Assembly: GCA_030704615.1 (NCBI GenBank)
Contig: CM060732.1
Coordinates: forward strand, 56,234,001 to 56,298,000
Length of the DNA stretch: 64,000 nucleotides
Reading direction: 5' to 3'
Origin: Takakia lepidozioides
Taxonomy: Eukaryota; Plantae; Bryophyta
Each line of letters starts with the position of its first letter. The stretch's first letter is position 1. The position numbers and the translations under genes are program-made. Shown here one piece after another: positions 12,649-47,233 of this stretch. The notes under the pieces were generated by a model. The model worked only from the letters and a program-made list of their open reading frames with translations, ran no database searches and was not told the origin of the DNA.

Positions 12649-14954
12649 CCTTCACTCCAGGAACATTAGGGGCCTTGGATCAGATCCTTCCTCTCTCAAA
12701 AGGCTGAGAATCAAAACTTGGATGGCTCCCTTCCTCTCTGGTGACTCTATAGTATTTCTACAGGAACACAAGCTAGACCAGACCAAAATCGACAACCTTT
12801 CATACTATCTATGGCCTATAACAAACTCTCTTTGGAAACCAACCTCTTCAGGCACCAAAAGAGGGACGGCGATATTATTATCTCCTTCTTTACAACCCTT
12901 TCTCGCAGCAGAAGATATATGGATACCTGGCAGACTGCAGTTCTGCGCAATAACCCTACCCAACGCAGCTGGCTCGATTGGGTTAGTGAACATTTACGCT
13001 CCAAACTCATCTGCAGAAAGGTCAGAATTCTGGAGACTTCTCAATGCAAGAATGAAAGATCAACTAAACATAGACAGCTGGATTGTAACAGGTGATCTTA
13101 ATATGGTTGAGGTCCAGGAGGATAGGCGAGGGGCTGGAACCTTCACCCCAAATTCAGAAGAGATGGACCAATGGTTCAACTGTGCTCAAACACATAGTCT
13201 CAAGGAGGCAACACCTATTTTTGGTCAAGCTTCCAATATCACCTTTACATGGTCCAACAATAGAACCCTCACCGACCTTAGCATGGCTCGTCTTGACAGA
13301 GCTTACCTTTCCCTCAATTTTGTTCAATTCTCTAAAAGAGCCCAGCAGGAACCCATTCCCTTGGGATTTGACCACGCACCAATCACCCTTTCTATCTCAA
13401 TCCCTCATTCATGCCAACGAGGTAGAGGCCTCTACAAGCTAAACAATCTCCTCCTCAAATTACCCTCCTTCAAACAGGGTCTTTTGCTGGCTTGGTCTCA
13501 GGCTGGCAACCCAGACCTAAATCCAACTGAGCTTTTCCTGGCCAAGCTAAAAGCGGTCAATACAGAAAGCCAAAAAATGAGCCGGGAATTGGCACTCATC
13601 CGGAAGAGAAGGGTTAAGGCATTATCTAAATGCCTCAAAGTATGCCAATCTGCATTGGAATCCAGGCATTGCGATGAAGATACTTACCAAACTTATATCC
13701 AAGCCAGGAACAATCTAGACATTCACCATAAATTCCAGGAAAGAAAGTGGAAGTTACAAGCGGGGGTTAGCTGGTCAACAAAAGGGGAAAAGATGACAAA
13801 ATACTTCTTTGACAAGACCAGATTGAGAAGAGTTCACAGACCATCTCTGAACTTGTGGCCCAGCCATCCGGAATCTCAAACACAGCACCTAAATCGATGG
13901 CAACCCATGCTGGGGACCATTTCCAGCAACTTTTTCACAGTGACAGCATCTCCCTAGAACCGTCTGATGAATAGACAGCCTGTCTGATTCACACTCCTAC
14001 CATGCTTTCTCTGGAATATGCCGCGCAACTAGAGGGAGACTTCTCTGACTTGGAACTAGAGGAAGCTCTATCTAAGATGCAGAACAACAAATCGCCTGGT
14101 ATAGATGGCATTTCTGTTGAATTTTATAAAGCATTTTTGCCAGAGATTTCAGGGGACTTTACAGGCATGGCCAACCATCTATTTCAGCAAGGTCAAATGC
14201 CACCTTCAATGGCTCAAGGGGTTATTACATTGTTGTACAAAAAGGGGGACAGAACGAATTTTTTGAATTATCGCCCTATAACCCTTCTGAATGTCGCCTA
14301 CAAAATCATTGCCAAGGCTCTCGCCCTTAGACTGCAACCTCTTCTTCCTTCATATTCGGCCCAACCAGACAGGATTTATTAAAGGCCAGTATATTCTGGA
14401 TAACCTCCTCCTTGCACAGGAAATTCCAGACTATGCCCTAAGGACCAATCAAGCCATTGCCCTTCTTCTCTTGGATTTTGAAAAGGCTTTTGACCGGGTG
14501 GAATGGTCCTATTTGCTTGCAGCCTTGCTAAAATTTGGGTTCCCTCATTCTTTTTGTAAATGGGTCAAGGTTCTCCTTACTTCTTCATCCAGTAGGGTTA
14601 CTGTAAATGGCCACTTGTCTTCTTCCTTCCCTCTTCAGCGATCAGTTAGACAGGGATGTCCCCTCTCACCCTTTCTGTTTCTGGTAGTGGCAGATACCCT
14701 GGGGTATATGTTGCAGCAAAACCAATTAATGACAGGCCTTAGGGTCTCAAACTATATAACGGGCCAATACACCTACCTGACTGACTCTATGTTCGTGGAT
14801 GACACGTTTTTAATGCTGCAAGCAAAGTCAGAAAACTTGGACCAAGCGGGACAGACTCTGCATACCTTTTGCAAAGCCTCGGGATTCAAAATTAATTGGA
14901 ACAAAACTTCAGGCATGCTCGATGGTGACCTAACGGCTTCCACTATGGGCTCAT
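12638..14954 (+). pseudogene. LINE ORF2, 5' part: apurinic-like endonuclease and reverse transcriptase
   Basis: APE motifs NIRGLG, FLQEHK, NIYAP, GDLN, ARLDRAY, DHAPI. RT motifs KSPGIDG, NYRPITLLN, LDFEKAFDRV, VRQGCPLSP, FVDDT. Confidence 0.93.
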
Positions 14955-15923
14955 TGTTAGAGGACTGTCCAGGACTTAGACACTTTTACGGGATCTGTGG
15001 GGTACCCTTAATTTTTGCACAGACTGAGACCAACAGGAGCCTTAGGGGTGACAGCAGCGCACTTTAGGGGGGGGGGGGGGGTACACAGCCCGTCACAGCC
15101 ACAGCAGCTCGTCACAGCCGACAGAGCCCGTCATAGCCAACACAGCTCGTCACAGTCCGACACAGCTCGTCACAGCCAGTCACAGCTCGATACAGCTGAC
15201 ACAGTCCAACACAGTCGCACAGCCAGTCACAGCTTGACACAGCTGTCACGACCATAGGGAACGGATAGCAGGACAGGGAATGACTGTGGGGAACAACATC
15301 TGCGAATGGAACATGTTAGTTCACGGGTGACGGTTGGTGAGGGAAACGGTTAGAACACGGGTAGGAAGATAAAGCGAGGAGCGAGGACTGGAAAACATCA
15401 CTTCTTGGGAATCACTGCGGGAAGAGTACACTTCTTGGGGGGACTTCGGACATCACTGGGGACAGGGCCGAGAGGGCAGAGGCGTATCTCTGAGCAGAAA
15501 GAGGGAGAGCACGGAGTAGGAGAGGACGATGTTGATGCTTAATGAATGCAAGCAGTAGAATTGTAATGTATAGAGCAGATTAGAGACTCCATGGCTTCAG
15601 CCTGATACTTGATAGATATTAATCTGATACACACTTCATACTCACACTGTGTAGAGAGATCTGAGTGAAGCTGTGGAATGAATGGATGAGTTGATGGAAT
15701 CCGATAGATTGCTGAAGCAAACTGATACTTAATTACCAACAGTAAGGTAACTAGCTAACATGAATGCGGGAAGGAAAACAAATAGAAAACACCCATGATA
15801 CACTAGCTGTAGGTCATGACTGATTGTTCTGAGCGGGCTGAGTGCTTAGAGATTTCCAACTCTTCTATCTTGGAGTTTCCGCCTCGGATAGCGAAGGGAT
15901 GGGTGAGTAAAAGCCGCGCGACA
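14955..15923 (+). repeat. 5' LTR (969 bp) with cacagc-rich minisatellite
   Basis: Starts TGTTAGAGGACTGTC and ends CGCGACA; highly similar to 27152-28242. Confidence 0.93.
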
Positions 15924-41200: not shown

Positions 41201-43540
41201 ATTAAACCATTAAAATATTTGTAGTGCTAGTTGGACTCCTTTTGTGCTATCCACGGTGCAATTGGGCTGCCACCTCGATATCTAGGATAAAAGTTTATTT
41301 ACTGGTGGCTACCTTACCCGTACTTAAAAACGTACATGGACATTACATCTTTACCACATACCACACATCAGACGCGCCCTTACTATTATACCTACCACTA
41401 CCCCCATACACCCGAGGAATAACTGGACATCGGATCCACGTATCACTTGCCTAAATACTTTAACAACATGTCAAGCACTTATGCCTCCACCTGCCAATCC
41501 CCAAGATATTCCTAATTGGATAGCTGCTCTCTCCAAAATTGGAAGAGATGCCAAAAAAGCCGCTTACAATATTACCAAACAAAAAGTCGCCACCAAATCA
41601 CAAAAAAATTGTCTCTTTTTTTAACCAACTGCTACGCGACCACCCCAAAATAGCTCATAAAGCCATATTTAATCTTGCCCTCAACCCACCAATTGATTGT
41701 CTCAAACACAGGCATGGCCACCTGCTAACCAATCCAACGGACATCAACCAAGAAATATGGTTACAAGCATCCTCAACCTACACTCCCACAGTTACAAACT
41801 GTCTACACCCTAGTCTCCACACTGCTAATTGTATGTGTAAAGCTAAACACTATCCATGGCATGATATAGATGGCTTCTCGATTGACAATAGAGGATCCCC
41901 AACGGACCGTATTCTAGACTTATTCACAATAGATCTCTACGAATCATATCTCAAAAAACTATCTAAATCTAAAGCCCCGGGCCCTGATCTTATCCCAAAT
42001 GCCATACTTCAAGCATTGGACCCTTAACTTCATCACCTATTCTTTAAAAAATTTCAACTATGTTACAAACTGAAACGAATTCCACACTCTTGGAAGCATA
42101 GCCGCACCATTCTACTCTTTAAAAAAGGTGACCCTACAGATCTTAGTAATTACAGGCCCATAGCACTGGCCAACACCATATACAAGCTATTCACCAGACA
42201 ATCTCGCCATCCTAGCACACAAACCACAACACCTAAACCGACAAGTTAACAAACTATTTCGATTCAATCTATGGTCAGGCATGGGACTCAGCTTACACAA
42301 ATGCGCCATCACTACCGCCACACATCACAGTCGGCTCACTAAAGCAGCCATAGCCTCACATTGCAAACTCTATGTACACTACCAAAACACATTTTTCCCT
42401 TTCCTGGGACCAGATGAGCCATACACCTACCTGGGTATCCAATTAGTACCCTCCCTCACCTGGCACATCCAAAAAGACTCTACATCATCCAAACTAGCTA
42501 CCAAAAGTCTGGCCCTACTCAAATCCCCAATTGTCATCCGTCCGAAACTATCAATCATTCAATCCGTACTACAAACGCAAATTCAATACTCATTTCATGC
42601 CGCACCCTTCTCCCTACCAGACATCAAAAAACTTGATAAAAATATTATTCAACTCACAAAGCGTGTATGTGGCTTACCAACTAGTACCCCTAATGCCCTC
42701 ACGCAACTCCCAACTGACAGCTACGGAATCGGTTCTAGCCCCTTAATCATATCATACGCTCGCACATTAGGCACACAATTAAAAGAAGCACTCAACAATC
42801 CTCGACGTCTCGGTATCATTTATCAGGGCCTCCTCAAACACGTCGCATTAAAATACAATGGCGTTTACTCACTATCATCATTGCACCCACAAGCCTGCCT
42901 ACACTCCCCTACTGCCCGCACACTACTCATCCTACGCCAAATGAAAATTAGCATACAAACCGACCTGCCGGATTACCCTAACACCTCGTCACCCCTAGAA
43001 CGCGCATGGCTCACAAACCCTTTCTTATCACAATTCGACATCTCTCATCCGAAACAAAAAATCCCCATCCTTACATATTTCAAAGAACGTCAAATTACCA
43101 CCCTCACCCAACTTACCACCGCCTCCAGCCATCGACTTTTAAAACCAGACGACTTCACTCTTAAATTATCCGGAGCTACGACCAAAACCACTCGATACCT
43201 ACACCATCTCTGAACCCCCTCAGCAACTTGCACCCTCCACTGCGATATCCCATGTCTCTACTATCCCCATACAGTTCAAGACCTGCTCCCCCAGTACCGA
43301 TCCTCCCCTACTGCCTCCATCTATCAAACACTTAGAACGGCATATGCCGCCAATACCCCCACAGTCACAGAACCCGGCCCCCCCTCTCATCTCTCTAACA
43401 CACAACATACCGAACTTGACCACAACCCGAATGTGCCATTTAACCCCTCACCTAATATGCAAGGCCCCCCCACCCACTCCCAACCACTCACCACAGCGCC
43501 CCCCCCATCTTCTCCACACAACGATGACAATAATAATGCA

Positions 43541-43740
43541 TACATCATTGAAGCCATACTAGGAGTCAAAACCCAAACATCAATCGATGCCTTCGGTGCC
43601 ACATGTATTGACACCTACTACCACTGTAAATGGGCTGGTTACTCCTCAGAAGACAACACATGGCAGATAACAGATGACCTATTTGGCCCACATGACGATT
43701 GTGACCCTGAACACAATCTTGCCCTTCTCACCTCCTTCCA
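43541..43740 (+). other. Chromodomain within the non-LTR ORF
   Basis: YIIEAILG...YYHCKWAGYSSEDNTWQ matches the chromo consensus (Y.VE.I...Y.vKW.GY..edNTWE), with aromatic cage residues Y, W and Y retained. Confidence 0.85.
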
Positions 43741-44139
43741 TAAACATACTAACACGGACTACTTAACACACATTCACCAACAACACACCACCCCCGCCCA
43801 ACTTACAGATAGTCGATACATTCACCAGCCGATCTCTGCCCCTAACGTGTACATCTGCACAACTGAGTGTAACCCCGACAAAGATGTCAAGCACGACCAA
43901 CCTCTAATTCACATGGGCCCCCGCCTTTCCAATATTTACGCTCAACACGGCCGCTTCATTGGACTCATTCCTAATAACAGATTAACATGGTTGTGGGAGA
44001 AGTATTCTACTGCAAACTCATACCCACAATCTTTACAACCCCCAAACAAGACTTCGCGACCGAATTATATTGGCTCACAGACCGCTACCTCAAAGACACC
44101 CCCCCCAAGAATCTATGATCCCTCACCCGACTAGAAATA

Positions 44140-44626
44140 GCATGCGCATACTATGCCATACCCCAAGATATTCTCGCCTTGCTTATCCATACATTCCAGC
44201 TTACTCACTCACTCATATTATTCCAATCCACTGACATGTCCTATGGACTTGCACACATTTTCCAGCCCGCACCACAGGGATTGTCTCTTTGGAGCTACCA
44301 GTAATGCTACCCAACATACCTGGGAGGGTAAGGGCTTTGCCCACCCCCCCTTTGGCCCTCTCGCTTATGAAGCTCTCCAATGGGCAAGATTTGCAGCACA
44401 CTCCTCTCCTTTTGCCTCCACAATCCTCATCCTCACACAACAAAATACACCTAACACCCCCCACCCTCTCCTACGACTCCTGGAAGGGATCAATCTACTC
44501 GCCACAATTGACCCAAATCAGCTTAAGTACGCTCATACCCCCCCTCTTCCCAAGTACCTCAAAAGGAAAGAACCTACCCTAACTCTGATTCTACATGTCC
44601 AAACCCCCTTCATACAAACATACTGA
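44140..44626 (+). other. PCIF1/CAPAM-like N6-adenine methyltransferase domain within the non-LTR ORF
   Basis: After correcting a 4-bp ACTC slippage near 44205: YAIPQDILALLIHTFQLTHSYYSNPLTCPMDLHTFSSPHHRDCLFGATSNATQHTWEGKGFAHPPF...SSPFASTILIL. This is collinear with the PCIF1 core as recalled (LP..VF..L...F....ECFASPLN....YCS....D..FGS.G.......GS..ANPPF...SSPEPLSFIVFIP). Confidence 0.7.
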
Positions 44627-44853
44627 CACCTTTTTTCCACCAGCTAGACCAGTTGCTAACCATAACTCATAAAATGAAGGTCACCATTCCTTTACCCAAC
44701 TACACCCCTCCACACCCACACAACCACCACATTTTTTGCTGCATGGGCCCCCCCCCCCCCCCCCCCCCCCAAGGTAATACCAGCAACCCCCCTTCCCCAA
44801 TCCCCTCAATATATCAACAAAACATCACCCTCAAGTATCCCCCGACAAACTCA

Positions 44854-45225
44854 CACTACACCGATGGATCCCTCACCAAACCTAATGCAGGATATGGAAT
44901 TTATCACGCCGACAGCGGTCGGGGTGTTGCCCTCCGGCTCCCTGGCCCTGCCACCATTCTAAGGGCTGAGCTCATGGCCATCCACGACGCTCTCTCTCTA
45001 CTTGATGCTTCCCCCCCCTTACTACATCTTCATTGATAGCCTCACCTCTCTATTTCTTATTCGAAACCACATCTCCCGCCCTTCTTCCCATCATCATCAC
45101 CCCGACCGCAACCTCATTGCCGCCATTGTCCAAAGGGTCATTTCCAAAAACATCCAGTCCATTTCCTCAAAGTTCGCTCGCACACTGGCATTCATGGTAA
45201 TGAGGAAGCAGACCTACTCGCTCAA
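44854..45225 (+). other. RNase H domain
   Basis: YTDGS...AGYGIY...RAELMAI...FIDSLTSL...KVRSHTGIHGNEEADLLA: catalytic D-E-D-D and His are present across two frameshifts. Confidence 0.9.
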
Positions 45226-46599
45226 CTCGGAGCCTCTCAACCCACAATCGAACCCACAGCCGACCCTTTTCACATCGCCCATACCCATCCCTTCTGGTTC
45301 ATACACCCCGTCCCGGACCCCCCTGCACCCAGACCAATCCGAAACCTTTTGATCACTCTAACCAGAGAAGCAAACAAGCAAGCTGCAACCTCCCTCAATC
45401 ACACCAATGTACACATCCAAAAATGGACTCAATCAAATGTATTGCACCATAAACTCTCAAATTATTTCTGCTAACCAAAGCTACCACTGACGCACAAATC
45501 CGACAAACACTCAAATTTAGATACGCCCAATACATGGGTCACCAGCGCAAACACATCTTCTGGCCGCATATGTTCCCATCTCCATACTGCCCATTATGTT
45601 CAACCACTCACCAAGCTCGTGACACCTGACCACATCTCCTCAGCCAATATACACACCCGACCATACATGGCCTTCACATCACACGACACAACCAGGTAGT
45701 CTGGCATCTCCATAAGCTCTTTCTAAACCGTGCTGAAACCAGATGGTTCTCGCTCATAAACGCTGGCACCTACCAAGGTCGGCCACCCGACCACACTAAG
45801 CCACCCTGGCTGCTACCGTGCATATGTACCCAATCACCATGCTCATGCCCTGCTAGGCTTTGCCCGGACATACTTCTTGTACAAGGCCTACCCATTAACA
45901 CCCTACGCCCCACCTCATCATCCCCACAATTCACCATTCATTTTATTAAATTCACATTTTGCCACGATCGTTACCCCAATGACTCGATTTTAGAAAAACG
46001 TCAAAAATATGCCCCGCTTATTCTTGCAATCAGATGGTATGGCTGGAAAACTGGGCCATTAACCGTCATCACCGCCAGTACTCAAGGCGGCATTCATAAT
46101 GCCAGTATCACCGACATAAATGATAACTTCAAAATTCCCACTCTTCCCATTCACAACTGCTTCAAAGCAATTCACCTCACGGCACTCCGTTCACTCACAG
46201 CTATTATCACCAACAAACGCCAACTGGAATCCGGCACCTCAATCGCACCCTAGGTCCCTCAGGGTACCCCTGGGTACCCAGGGGTACCACAGACTACTTT
46301 CTACGGTCACTTGATGTCCCACATGACACCTTTTTTTTTATAGGACCCACCCTCGAAAGGGGGCAGTAGCCGCAAGACGAAGTGGCTCTTAGTTACGCCG
46401 GCTTCGACCGGAGTCTTCTCTCTCTTTTACTTATAAAAAATACACGTAAAAAATATTTAAAAGAGATAACATCTATTTTGGATGTGATGTGTCATACATC
46501 TGGACGCGACGTCCAATGTGACGATGAAATATGAGTGTCACGTTACGTCCATTTGTACAGCCCTGGAAAAGATATTAGTCGGATCGAGTAAGAAATCCC

Positions 46600-47233
46600 T
46601 CTCCTCCCCCCCCCCTCCCTCCCTCCCTCAATCACCATCAGCCTGAGGCAGCATTTCGCTCCAATGAAGCGGAACCCCCCTTCCTCAACCAGTGGAGGGG
46701 TTAGACATCACGGAATCCTCCCAGGCAAATCTCAGCAAAGATGTATCCCCTAATCAAAGTGGACCTGCAAAATACGACCAAAGAAGTACTTTCTCTACAG
46801 GAGCACAACATTCTTGATCATTTCCCAGGAATGAAGGTAAGTAGGACTCAGGCAAGGGATTGGGCAATCAAGAACCTAGGGGGTTCGGGAGAGCTTCTGC
46901 ACCAATTCTGCAATGATAAAGGCAGGGGTTCTACACCATCAATTTTGAGACTCCGGGAGCTGCAGCACACGCTCTATCTCTCAATCCTCACTCCAGGGGG
47001 TTCAATGTTAATATCTTTCCATGGTCATCAAAGATGGGTCACAAAAACGGAAAACTCTGGGGCCCCAGAGTGGTCTCCGTTCCATTTCTCCCTGACCAAT
47101 ACTTGATCAATCTCCCAGACATTGCCAATCATTTTGGACACTACTTAGGATGCATAGGTGTCTTTGATCCCCTAATGAGCACGGAGAAGCTCCGCAAGAT
47201 TCTAGCTTGGAGTTCTGGGACTATAGCATCACG
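46600..47233 (+). pseudogene. Isolated 5' fragment of L1 ORF1, related to 10143-10700
   Basis: HFPGMKVSRTQARDWAIKNLGGSGELLHQFCNDKGRG / KNGKLWGPRVVSVPFLPDQYLINLPDIANHFG versus HFPGTKVDRATVRDWAIKHLGGPGELHQQFCHEKGRG / KNGKLWGPRIVSVPYIPDQYLINLADIANHFG. Confidence 0.85.

Follow-up and report, generated by a model that had tools for sequence, protein, structure and literature searches.

On the plus strand of a 64,000-nucleotide stretch of the bryophyte Takakia lepidozioides (assembly GCA_030704615.1, contig CM060732.1, positions 56,234,001 to 56,298,000; hereafter the window, in which all positions below are counted from the first letter), the segment 41304-46253 corresponds to a single decayed non-LTR element, that is, one of the retrotransposons without long terminal repeats. 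The element is probably a dead, 5′-truncated long interspersed nuclear element (LINE) of the Dualen/RandI type, whose family carries a chromodomain together with a non-catalytic module derived from PCIF1/CAPAM, the cap-specific m6Am methyltransferase of mRNA. Its parts follow one another in the order reverse transcriptase (RT), chromodomain, PCIF1-like module, RNase H, zinc finger of the CCHC type and restriction-like endonuclease (RLE), and the window contains one copy of the element only. An earlier note, made from the letters of this DNA, had described one decayed plus-strand path bearing these features; all of them were recovered on that strand and at those places. The window was read as stop-free pieces, which were never fused across stops or frameshifts and which served as the queries in all protein searches; no repaired or consensus sequence was made. 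The features of the element are given below, relatives being cited by handle (L or P followed by a number) and open reading frame being abbreviated to ORF.

41304-41606, plus strand: pre-RT region, the 5′-most part left; tblastn match to residues 32-125 of L011:5513-6571
41581-42195, plus strand: N-terminal part of the RT (fingers); 47% identity to L011 and 79% to residues 19-52 of the L015 RT
42196-42197, plus strand: junction of the RT deletion; residues 53-211 of the L015 RT are without counterpart
42197-43210, plus strand: C-terminal part of the RT, with the thumb; 42% identity to the L011 RT ORF and 44% to the L006 ORF
43541-43678, plus strand: chromodomain with a Y/W/Y cage; Pfam Chromo, AlphaFold model and Foldseek
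43980-44214, plus strand: PCIF1-like module, its N-terminal part (strand/helix); the alignment to the L003 ORF starts in frame 2 and passes to frame 1 (44017-44349)
44204-44623, plus strand: core of the PCIF1-like methyltransferase-fold module; matches to the relatives' profile and fold
44342-44353, plus strand: motif IV, H-P-P-F (CAC CCC CCC TTT), which sits at N-P-P-F of PCIF1
44830-45468, plus strand: RNase H in three reading-frame segments; Pfam RNase_H fragments and tblastn with P0002 and P0004
45483-45700, plus strand: CCHC zinc finger and RHN motif, decayed; 53-60% identity to P0002 and P0004
45630-46253, plus strand: RLE of the PD-(D/E)xK type, with the stop of the ORF; 44-48% identity to P0002 and P0004 over ∼200 residues
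46254-46430, plus strand: probable 3′ untranslated tail; the skew in composition fades between 46250 and 46400, and the exact end is uncertain

Taken alone, the segment 44141-44623 matched nothing in Pfam or among the PDB sequences, and a word-indexed protein search with it returned no match in its length range; the same type of search with region 1-220 of P0002 returned P0002 and P0001 only. An exhaustive HMMER search (phmmer) of 1.84 billion representatives with 44141-44623 rendered 98 relatives at E ≤ 1e-3, the best of them being P0001 (E 4e-31, 49% identity to the window piece). Relatives with 33-49% identity to this piece passed the Pfam family PCIF1_WW (PF12237, gathering score 31.1 bits) at 31.3-42.8 bits: 42.8 for P0109, 39.6 for P0018/P0112, 38.1 for P0099, 36.6 for P0113, 33.3 for L004, 32.1 for L006, 32.0 for L008 and 31.3 for P0116. 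When a profile of 41 family sequences was compared with all PDB sequences, only PCIF1/CAPAM was matched (6irx at 1e-4 and 6irv at 6e-3; zebrafish and human proteins). The AlphaFold model of P0001:96-357 (pLDDT 89.4, pTM 0.86) gave PCIF1 as the six best Foldseek matches, with E-values from 4e-10 (6irw) to 3e-7, generic methyltransferases appearing from 4e-3; VIA-align superimposed the model on residues 419-668 of human PCIF1 (6irw) with Z 18.4 over 228 residues (rmsd 4.1 Å), the next fold after PCIF1 reaching Z 7.9. Neighbours in the ESM Atlas, by features and by structure, were PCIF1_WW clusters. By sequence profile and predicted fold, the module is thus homologous to PCIF1/CAPAM, a kinship that had been suggested from the letters of the window.

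The part shared with PCIF1 is the C-terminal part of its core, with the active-site, catalytic and substrate-binding loops; over human residues 419-668 the fold is that of the PCIF1/CAPAM structures (PDB 6IRV-6IS0), and the two share one register for F(A/S)SPL, D..FGS and the A-x-P-P loop. The family differs from PCIF1 in having no counterpart to the WW domain or to anything N-terminal to residue 419, the cap contact R235 included, and in having its module embedded in a retrotransposon polyprotein. The missing portion most likely includes the helical domain, which in PCIF1 forms the capped-RNA groove (PMC13290413); upstream of the module there are instead the chromodomain and a linker of ∼100 residues. 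As a separate observation, the family has a conserved Trp 35 residues after the motif IV His, the distance that also separates W588 from N553 in human PCIF1. A PCIF1-like module with a G-Y-P-R loop was also seen at residues 356-448 of a 640-aa marine-protist protein (P0079; L018, a Tara Oceans scaffold) with no Pfam match to RT or RNase H, pointing either to a module that also occurs outside LINEs or to a very divergent element.

The catalytic motif was placed by aligning P0089 with zebrafish PCIF1, which sets A-H-P-P-x of the family on A-N-P-P-F, the register proposed beforehand for AHPPF of the window. In the 41-sequence alignment, position 1 of motif IV was His in 33 sequences, Phe in four, Tyr in two, and Ile and Arg in one each; Asn or Asp was found in none. 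Position 2 was Pro in 34, position 3 Pro in 16, His in eight and Thr in six, and position 4 Asn in 14, Asp in 11 and Thr in seven; Phe at position 4, present in the window, is rare in the family. In place of the catalytic Asn553 of PCIF1 the family thus has His, or in a few members Phe, Tyr, Ile or Arg, and most members lack a counterpart of Phe556. Over the wider match list, Asn at position 1 occurred only in the short fragments P0089 (NPGY) and P0072 (NPTS), neither of them canonical. P0089 (177 aa), which has FASPLN and an A-N-P-G-Y loop, is the nearest to NPP(F/Y) of all matches, and may by its sequence belong to a less derived, possibly active branch. His was also found in relatives of 62% GC and in GC-rich ones such as P0075, P0098, P0093 and P0085, and is therefore an ancient trait of the family and not a product of decay in the window copy. 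Of the two origins that the earlier note had left open for HPPF, the family trait was upheld and decay was not.

Outside position 1, several residues were near-invariant: a motif-I-like SPL, an acidic residue (D in 36/40), FG (38 and 37/40), Trp (40/41) and WA (39 and 38/41). Comparison of the open-frame copies L004, L005 and L006, whose motifs are A-F-P-T-D (L004 and L006) and A-F-P-M-D (L005), gave a ratio of non-synonymous to synonymous substitution rates (dN/dS) of 0.10-0.14 over the module at unsaturated dS (0.18-0.47), and the module spans contigs from bryophyte-like ones with 38-41% GC to one with 62% GC while keeping the same near-invariant residues. On these comparisons the module is under strong purifying selection and functional, but most likely non-catalytic. 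That it might instead be a functionless relic, decaying while the LINE carries it, would agree with the loss of the catalytic motif and with the loss of the chromodomain cage in some subfamilies, but the low dN/dS and the retention of the module over this range of base composition make such a relic quite improbable.

The earlier note had also seen in the module an adenine-methylation writer, a claim that the alignment did not sustain: the module is probably not a canonical N6-adenine methyltransferase, judging from the complete lack of Asn or Asp at the catalytic position of the 41 aligned sequences, the rarity of Phe at position 4 and the parts N-terminal to residue 419 that have no counterpart. 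It could nevertheless be argued that the module does methylate adenine (or another amino group), using a non-canonical H-P-P-x catalytic loop, and would so mark the RNA of the element or its new cDNA; the element would then be the reader and writer that the earlier note had proposed. The PCIF1 fold and homology are established, SPL, the acidic residue, FG and His are conserved and the module is under purifying selection, all of which would suit an enzyme; in addition, two papers report PCIF1 to be weakly active on uncapped RNA and DNA (PMC8931429; PMC9178792). Yet the subfamily in which selection was measured has Phe at the catalytic position and lacks the second proline (AFPTD), and the stacking aromatic residue at position 4 is mostly missing. 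When Asn553 and Phe556 of human PCIF1 were changed together (NPPF to APPA or SPPG), activity was abolished (bioRxiv 10.1101/485862). Moreover, the region of PCIF1 N-terminal to residue 419, which aids the binding of capped RNA, is absent, and the related domain of DIRS1 elements has been judged inactive (PMC4738411). An active enzyme is therefore rather unlikely.

That the chromodomain and the module belong to the ORF of the family, a point the earlier note had left to be checked in relatives, was borne out by single open frames in the independent metagenome contigs L003, L004, L006 and L008. A metagenome scan with a 7-sequence alignment gave contigs of 1-2 kb. L006 has one open frame of 660 codons with the RT thumb, a chromo-like region and the methyltransferase-like module (hereafter MT); L004 is open over 624 codons that cover MT, RNase H and CCHC; L003 is open over 498 codons with a chromodomain (41.9 bits) and PCIF1_WW; and L008 has the same domain order in a single uninterrupted frame. 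The proteins P0002 (715 aa) and P0004 (708 aa) read MT, RNase H, CCHC and RLE. Longer loci extended this picture. L011 (which, like L015, has 38-41% GC) contains an AP endonuclease (APE; Exo_endo_phos 25.9 bits, cut-off 24.5) followed by RT, a chromo-like region, MT, RNase H, CCHC and RLE, and L020 (62% GC) an APE (26.0 bits, cut-off 24.5) followed by RT (84.3 bits), MT, RNase H, CCHC and RLE. In L015 the APE match stayed below threshold (21.9 vs 27.4 bits) and is followed by RT, MT, RNase H, CCHC and RLE; L017 has the same layout from RT to RLE.

The flanking of the chromodomain/PCIF1-like block by stops and frameshifts in the window could be taken to mean that the block does not belong to the LINE and is private to this copy, having inserted on its own or come from a captured host gene fragment, and L010 indeed passes from RT to MT with no detectable chromo region. 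The recurrence of the same order in the single frames of L003, L004, L006 and L008 and in the long loci L011, L015, L017 and L020, together with a G-poor composition that is continuous through the block, leaves hardly any room for such an origin.

The joint presence of an APE and an RLE defines the Dualen/RandI group (Lescot et al. 2016, PMC5029228), and since the relatives carry both, theirs is a Dualen/RandI layout. L011, L015 and L020 share the order APE, RT, RNase H, CCHC and RLE with the elements of this group, and of this order the window preserves RT to RLE: its RLE lies at 45630-46253, RNase H and CCHC lie between RT and RLE collinearly with P0002 and P0004, no APE match was found, and the element is 5′-truncated at ∼41300. 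By the domain layout of the window copy and its relatives, then, the element is probably a Dualen/RandI-type LINE, the type that the earlier note had named, and the dual-endonuclease layout was seen in L011 and L020 (the APE of L015 being sub-threshold). Judged by its distribution among the aligned relatives, the PCIF1-like module seems to have long been part of a Dualen lineage.

The chromodomain is real. Residues 110-155 of the stop-free piece 43214-44131 matched Pfam Chromo (PF00385) at 25.4 bits, against a cut-off of 25.1, and an AlphaFold model of 43511-43792, made with six relatives in the alignment, had a pLDDT of 84 and showed three strands and a C-terminal helix. With this model, all 50 Foldseek matches listed from the PDB were chromodomains (Chp1, CDY1, SUV39H1, MPP8, CBX, Rhino, HP1), with target-normalised TM scores up to 0.84; their E-values were weak (0.008-0.1), the domain being short. 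In the sequence alignment, the aromatic cage consists of Y (AYIIE), W (KWAGY) and Y (GY) in both the window and L003, its closest relative for this domain (Chromo 41.9 bits), so the intact cage that had been read from the letters held up. The first and third cage positions are replaced in the distant subfamilies L006, L008, P0116 and P0113, and no chromodomain was detectable in L020, from the 62% GC contig; across the relatives compared, the domain appears to be restricted to the bryophyte-like branch. At L010:654-1215 an MT-like core begins ∼20 nt after the C-terminal part of the RT with no chromo region between them, which may reflect a deletion or a subfamily devoid of the domain.

The chromodomain of the window/L003 subfamily, with its complete cage, probably steers integration to chromatin marked by methyl-lysine, by analogy with the chromoviruses (Ty3/Gypsy), which likewise join a chromodomain to their retrotransposition machinery, presumably as a means of reaching marked chromatin. 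The two arrangements differ in that the chromodomain of chromoviruses is on the integrase, while here it follows the RT thumb and precedes the MT-like module of a non-LTR element, and in that within the LINE family the complete aromatic cage is found only in the window/L003 subfamily.

The window copy is dead, having lost the core of its RT and suffered many breaks of its frame. The element has five or more changes of frame, with in-frame stops at 42025, 43211, 44116 and 45627. The N-terminal part of the RT consists of two stop-free pieces, 41524-42024 and 42028-42246, separated by the stop at 42025-42027. When the RT of L015 (RVT_1 94.5 bits) was aligned, its residues 19-52 fell on 42094-42195 and its residues 212-365 on 42197-42655; 159 residues, the YADD motif among them, are gone at 42196, in keeping with the loss of the central RT motifs described beforehand. 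The C-terminal part of the RT retains a weak Pfam match to RVT_1 model positions 154-205. The segment 43980-44214 is in a frame different from that of its neighbours and contains a stop at 44116-44118, which leaves the stop-free pieces 43978-44115 and 44119-44301. Motifs of RNase H were found at 44857, 44962, 45029 and 45181, the Pfam RNase_H matches (21.1 and 24.4 bits) being to fragments. CPLC lies at 45588 and RHN at 45684; the last Cys of the zinc finger has become Tyr, and a conserved Trp has become the stop at 45627-45629. The RLE retains PD (45864), IKFTF (45945) and K..KY (45993) and ends with the stop codon at 46251-46253, its catalytic Glu having changed to Lys at 45948-45950 (IKFTF, vs IEFTY in P0002 and P0004).

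A tblastn comparison with the APE ORF of L011 found no match in the window, and with no AP endonuclease upstream the copy is 5′-truncated. At its 5′ edge a C-rich, G-poor composition begins abruptly at ∼41300; the coding strand from there to 46253 has 34.5% C and 12.7% G, a GC skew near -0.5 and an observed/expected CpG ratio of 0.68, and the bias fades past the last stop codon. The proteins of intact relatives are similarly rich in T, P, H, Q and N, from which it follows that the G-poor composition is a trait of the family and did not arise by decay after insertion. A target-site duplication was sought between the flanks; the sole word in common was a 9-mer of A/T, at chance level, and no poly(A) was found at the 3′ end of the element. 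A C-rich low-complexity tract (C runs, CCCT) lies on the plus strand at 46590-46640, ∼340 nt past the stop codon. A second, more distant non-LTR RT was found at 14023-14956 (plus strand), with 27-53% identity to RT pieces of L011 and L015 and 40% to the N-terminal part of the RT of the element, which points to a different LINE copy or family. Among the relatives, the APE ORF of L020 (L020:3056-4639) also matched Pfam PAPA-1 (27.9 bits, cut-off 25) N-terminal to the endonuclease. L019 contains another decayed copy of the family; two further features of this contig (L019:266-3358 and 13135-14049) are a Gypsy chromovirus fragment (RVT_1, RT_RNaseH, SH3_Tf2-1 and a weak Chromo) and a PiggyBac-like DDE_Tnp_1_7 transposase, the latter inserted within the LINE copy between the halves of its RNase H.

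These results indicate that the intact polyprotein of the family reads AP endonuclease, RT, chromodomain, PCIF1-derived module, RNase H, CCHC and RLE. Within it, the module most likely acts as a non-catalytic binding or scaffold unit, a role suggested by the strong purifying selection together with the retention of SPL, the acidic residue and FG(S); candidate ligands would be S-adenosylmethionine (SAM) or the RNA of the element itself, and the cage-intact chromodomain would direct integration to methyl-lysine-marked chromatin, as in chromoviruses. In its role the module would resemble the PCIF1-clade domain carried by DIRS1 elements, which was judged inactive and suggested to bind the transcript of the element or to mimic PCIF1 (Iyer, Zhang & Aravind 2016, PMC4738411). 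DIRS1 likewise carries a PCIF1-derived domain with substituted catalytic residues in a retrotransposon polyprotein; the earlier note had mentioned DAM-like methyltransferases in DIRS elements, and the link proved closer than it had claimed, the DIRS1 domain belonging to the PCIF1 clade. DIRS1 differs in being a tyrosine-recombinase element, whereas the family of the window is a LINE with endonucleases and has its domain before RNase H; no recombinase was found in the window element, L011, L015 or L020.

Several observations weigh against the proposal of a Dualen/RandI-type LINE with a non-catalytic module. The AP endonuclease was found in relatives only, not in the window copy. His is strongly conserved (33/41), even in the distant GC-rich relatives, which would fit a catalytic or ligand-binding role, and the N6 amino group of adenine could in principle donate a hydrogen bond to it. 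Residues of the cofactor pocket of class I methyltransferases are also conserved in the alignment, so that the module may bind SAM and may have some transferase activity. As to a role in binding RNA or the cap, the profile of the C-terminal half of the module gave no significant match among PDB sequences, and the cap-contact residues of PCIF1 thus could not be mapped on it. A more ambitious version is possible, though we hold it to be improbable: Dualen-type LINEs, from a GC-rich (possibly algal) relative to bryophytes, would share an ancient PCIF1-derived module whose conserved His-Pro loop and cofactor pocket still bind SAM and the 5′ end of their own RNA, or even methylate that RNA in a non-canonical manner, and this module would have been coupled to a cage-intact chromodomain in one bryophyte subfamily.

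Dualen/RandI non-LTR retrotransposons were reportedly described by Kojima and Fujiwara in 2005. The present family differs from them in what lies between RT and RNase H, namely a chromodomain and a PCIF1-derived module, which went unmentioned in the Dualen literature searched, the original 2005 paper lying outside that search. No paper joining PCIF1 with a retrotransposon and a chromodomain was found in the literature search, nor one in which a LINE is reported to carry either a chromodomain or a module like PCIF1, which agrees with the impression of the earlier note that the combination was undescribed. To our knowledge, and in the literature searched, no chromodomain has been described in a non-LTR element. 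The literature on Dualen and methyltransferases yielded only the SET domain of a cryptophyte Dualen; this element, Dualen-1_GCr, has a C48 peptidase besides its SET methyltransferase, and accessory domains of a chromatin type are thus known in the group (PMC5029228). What was known already comprises the Dualen/RandI type, the chromodomains of Gypsy elements, the SET-bearing Dualen and the PCIF1-clade domain of DIRS1, the only such domain reported in a mobile element.

The object in the window is itself merely a dead copy; the family is also present in environmental contigs and is thereby experimentally approachable. Accessory domains of this kind show how retrotransposons solve the problems of targeting and of recognising their own RNA, and a module that is conserved and selected in a Dualen lineage, yet is without the catalytic Asn, would provide a natural case of a pseudo-enzyme. 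If the DIRS1 domain arose separately, retroelements would here have recruited the PCIF1 fold a second time. Should the module indeed bind SAM and the RNA of the element beside a chromodomain, the family would be the first LINE to pair a reader of histone marks with an RNA-cap-directed module, and would open a way to study how the protein of a LINE tells its own transcript from others and comes to select heterochromatin.

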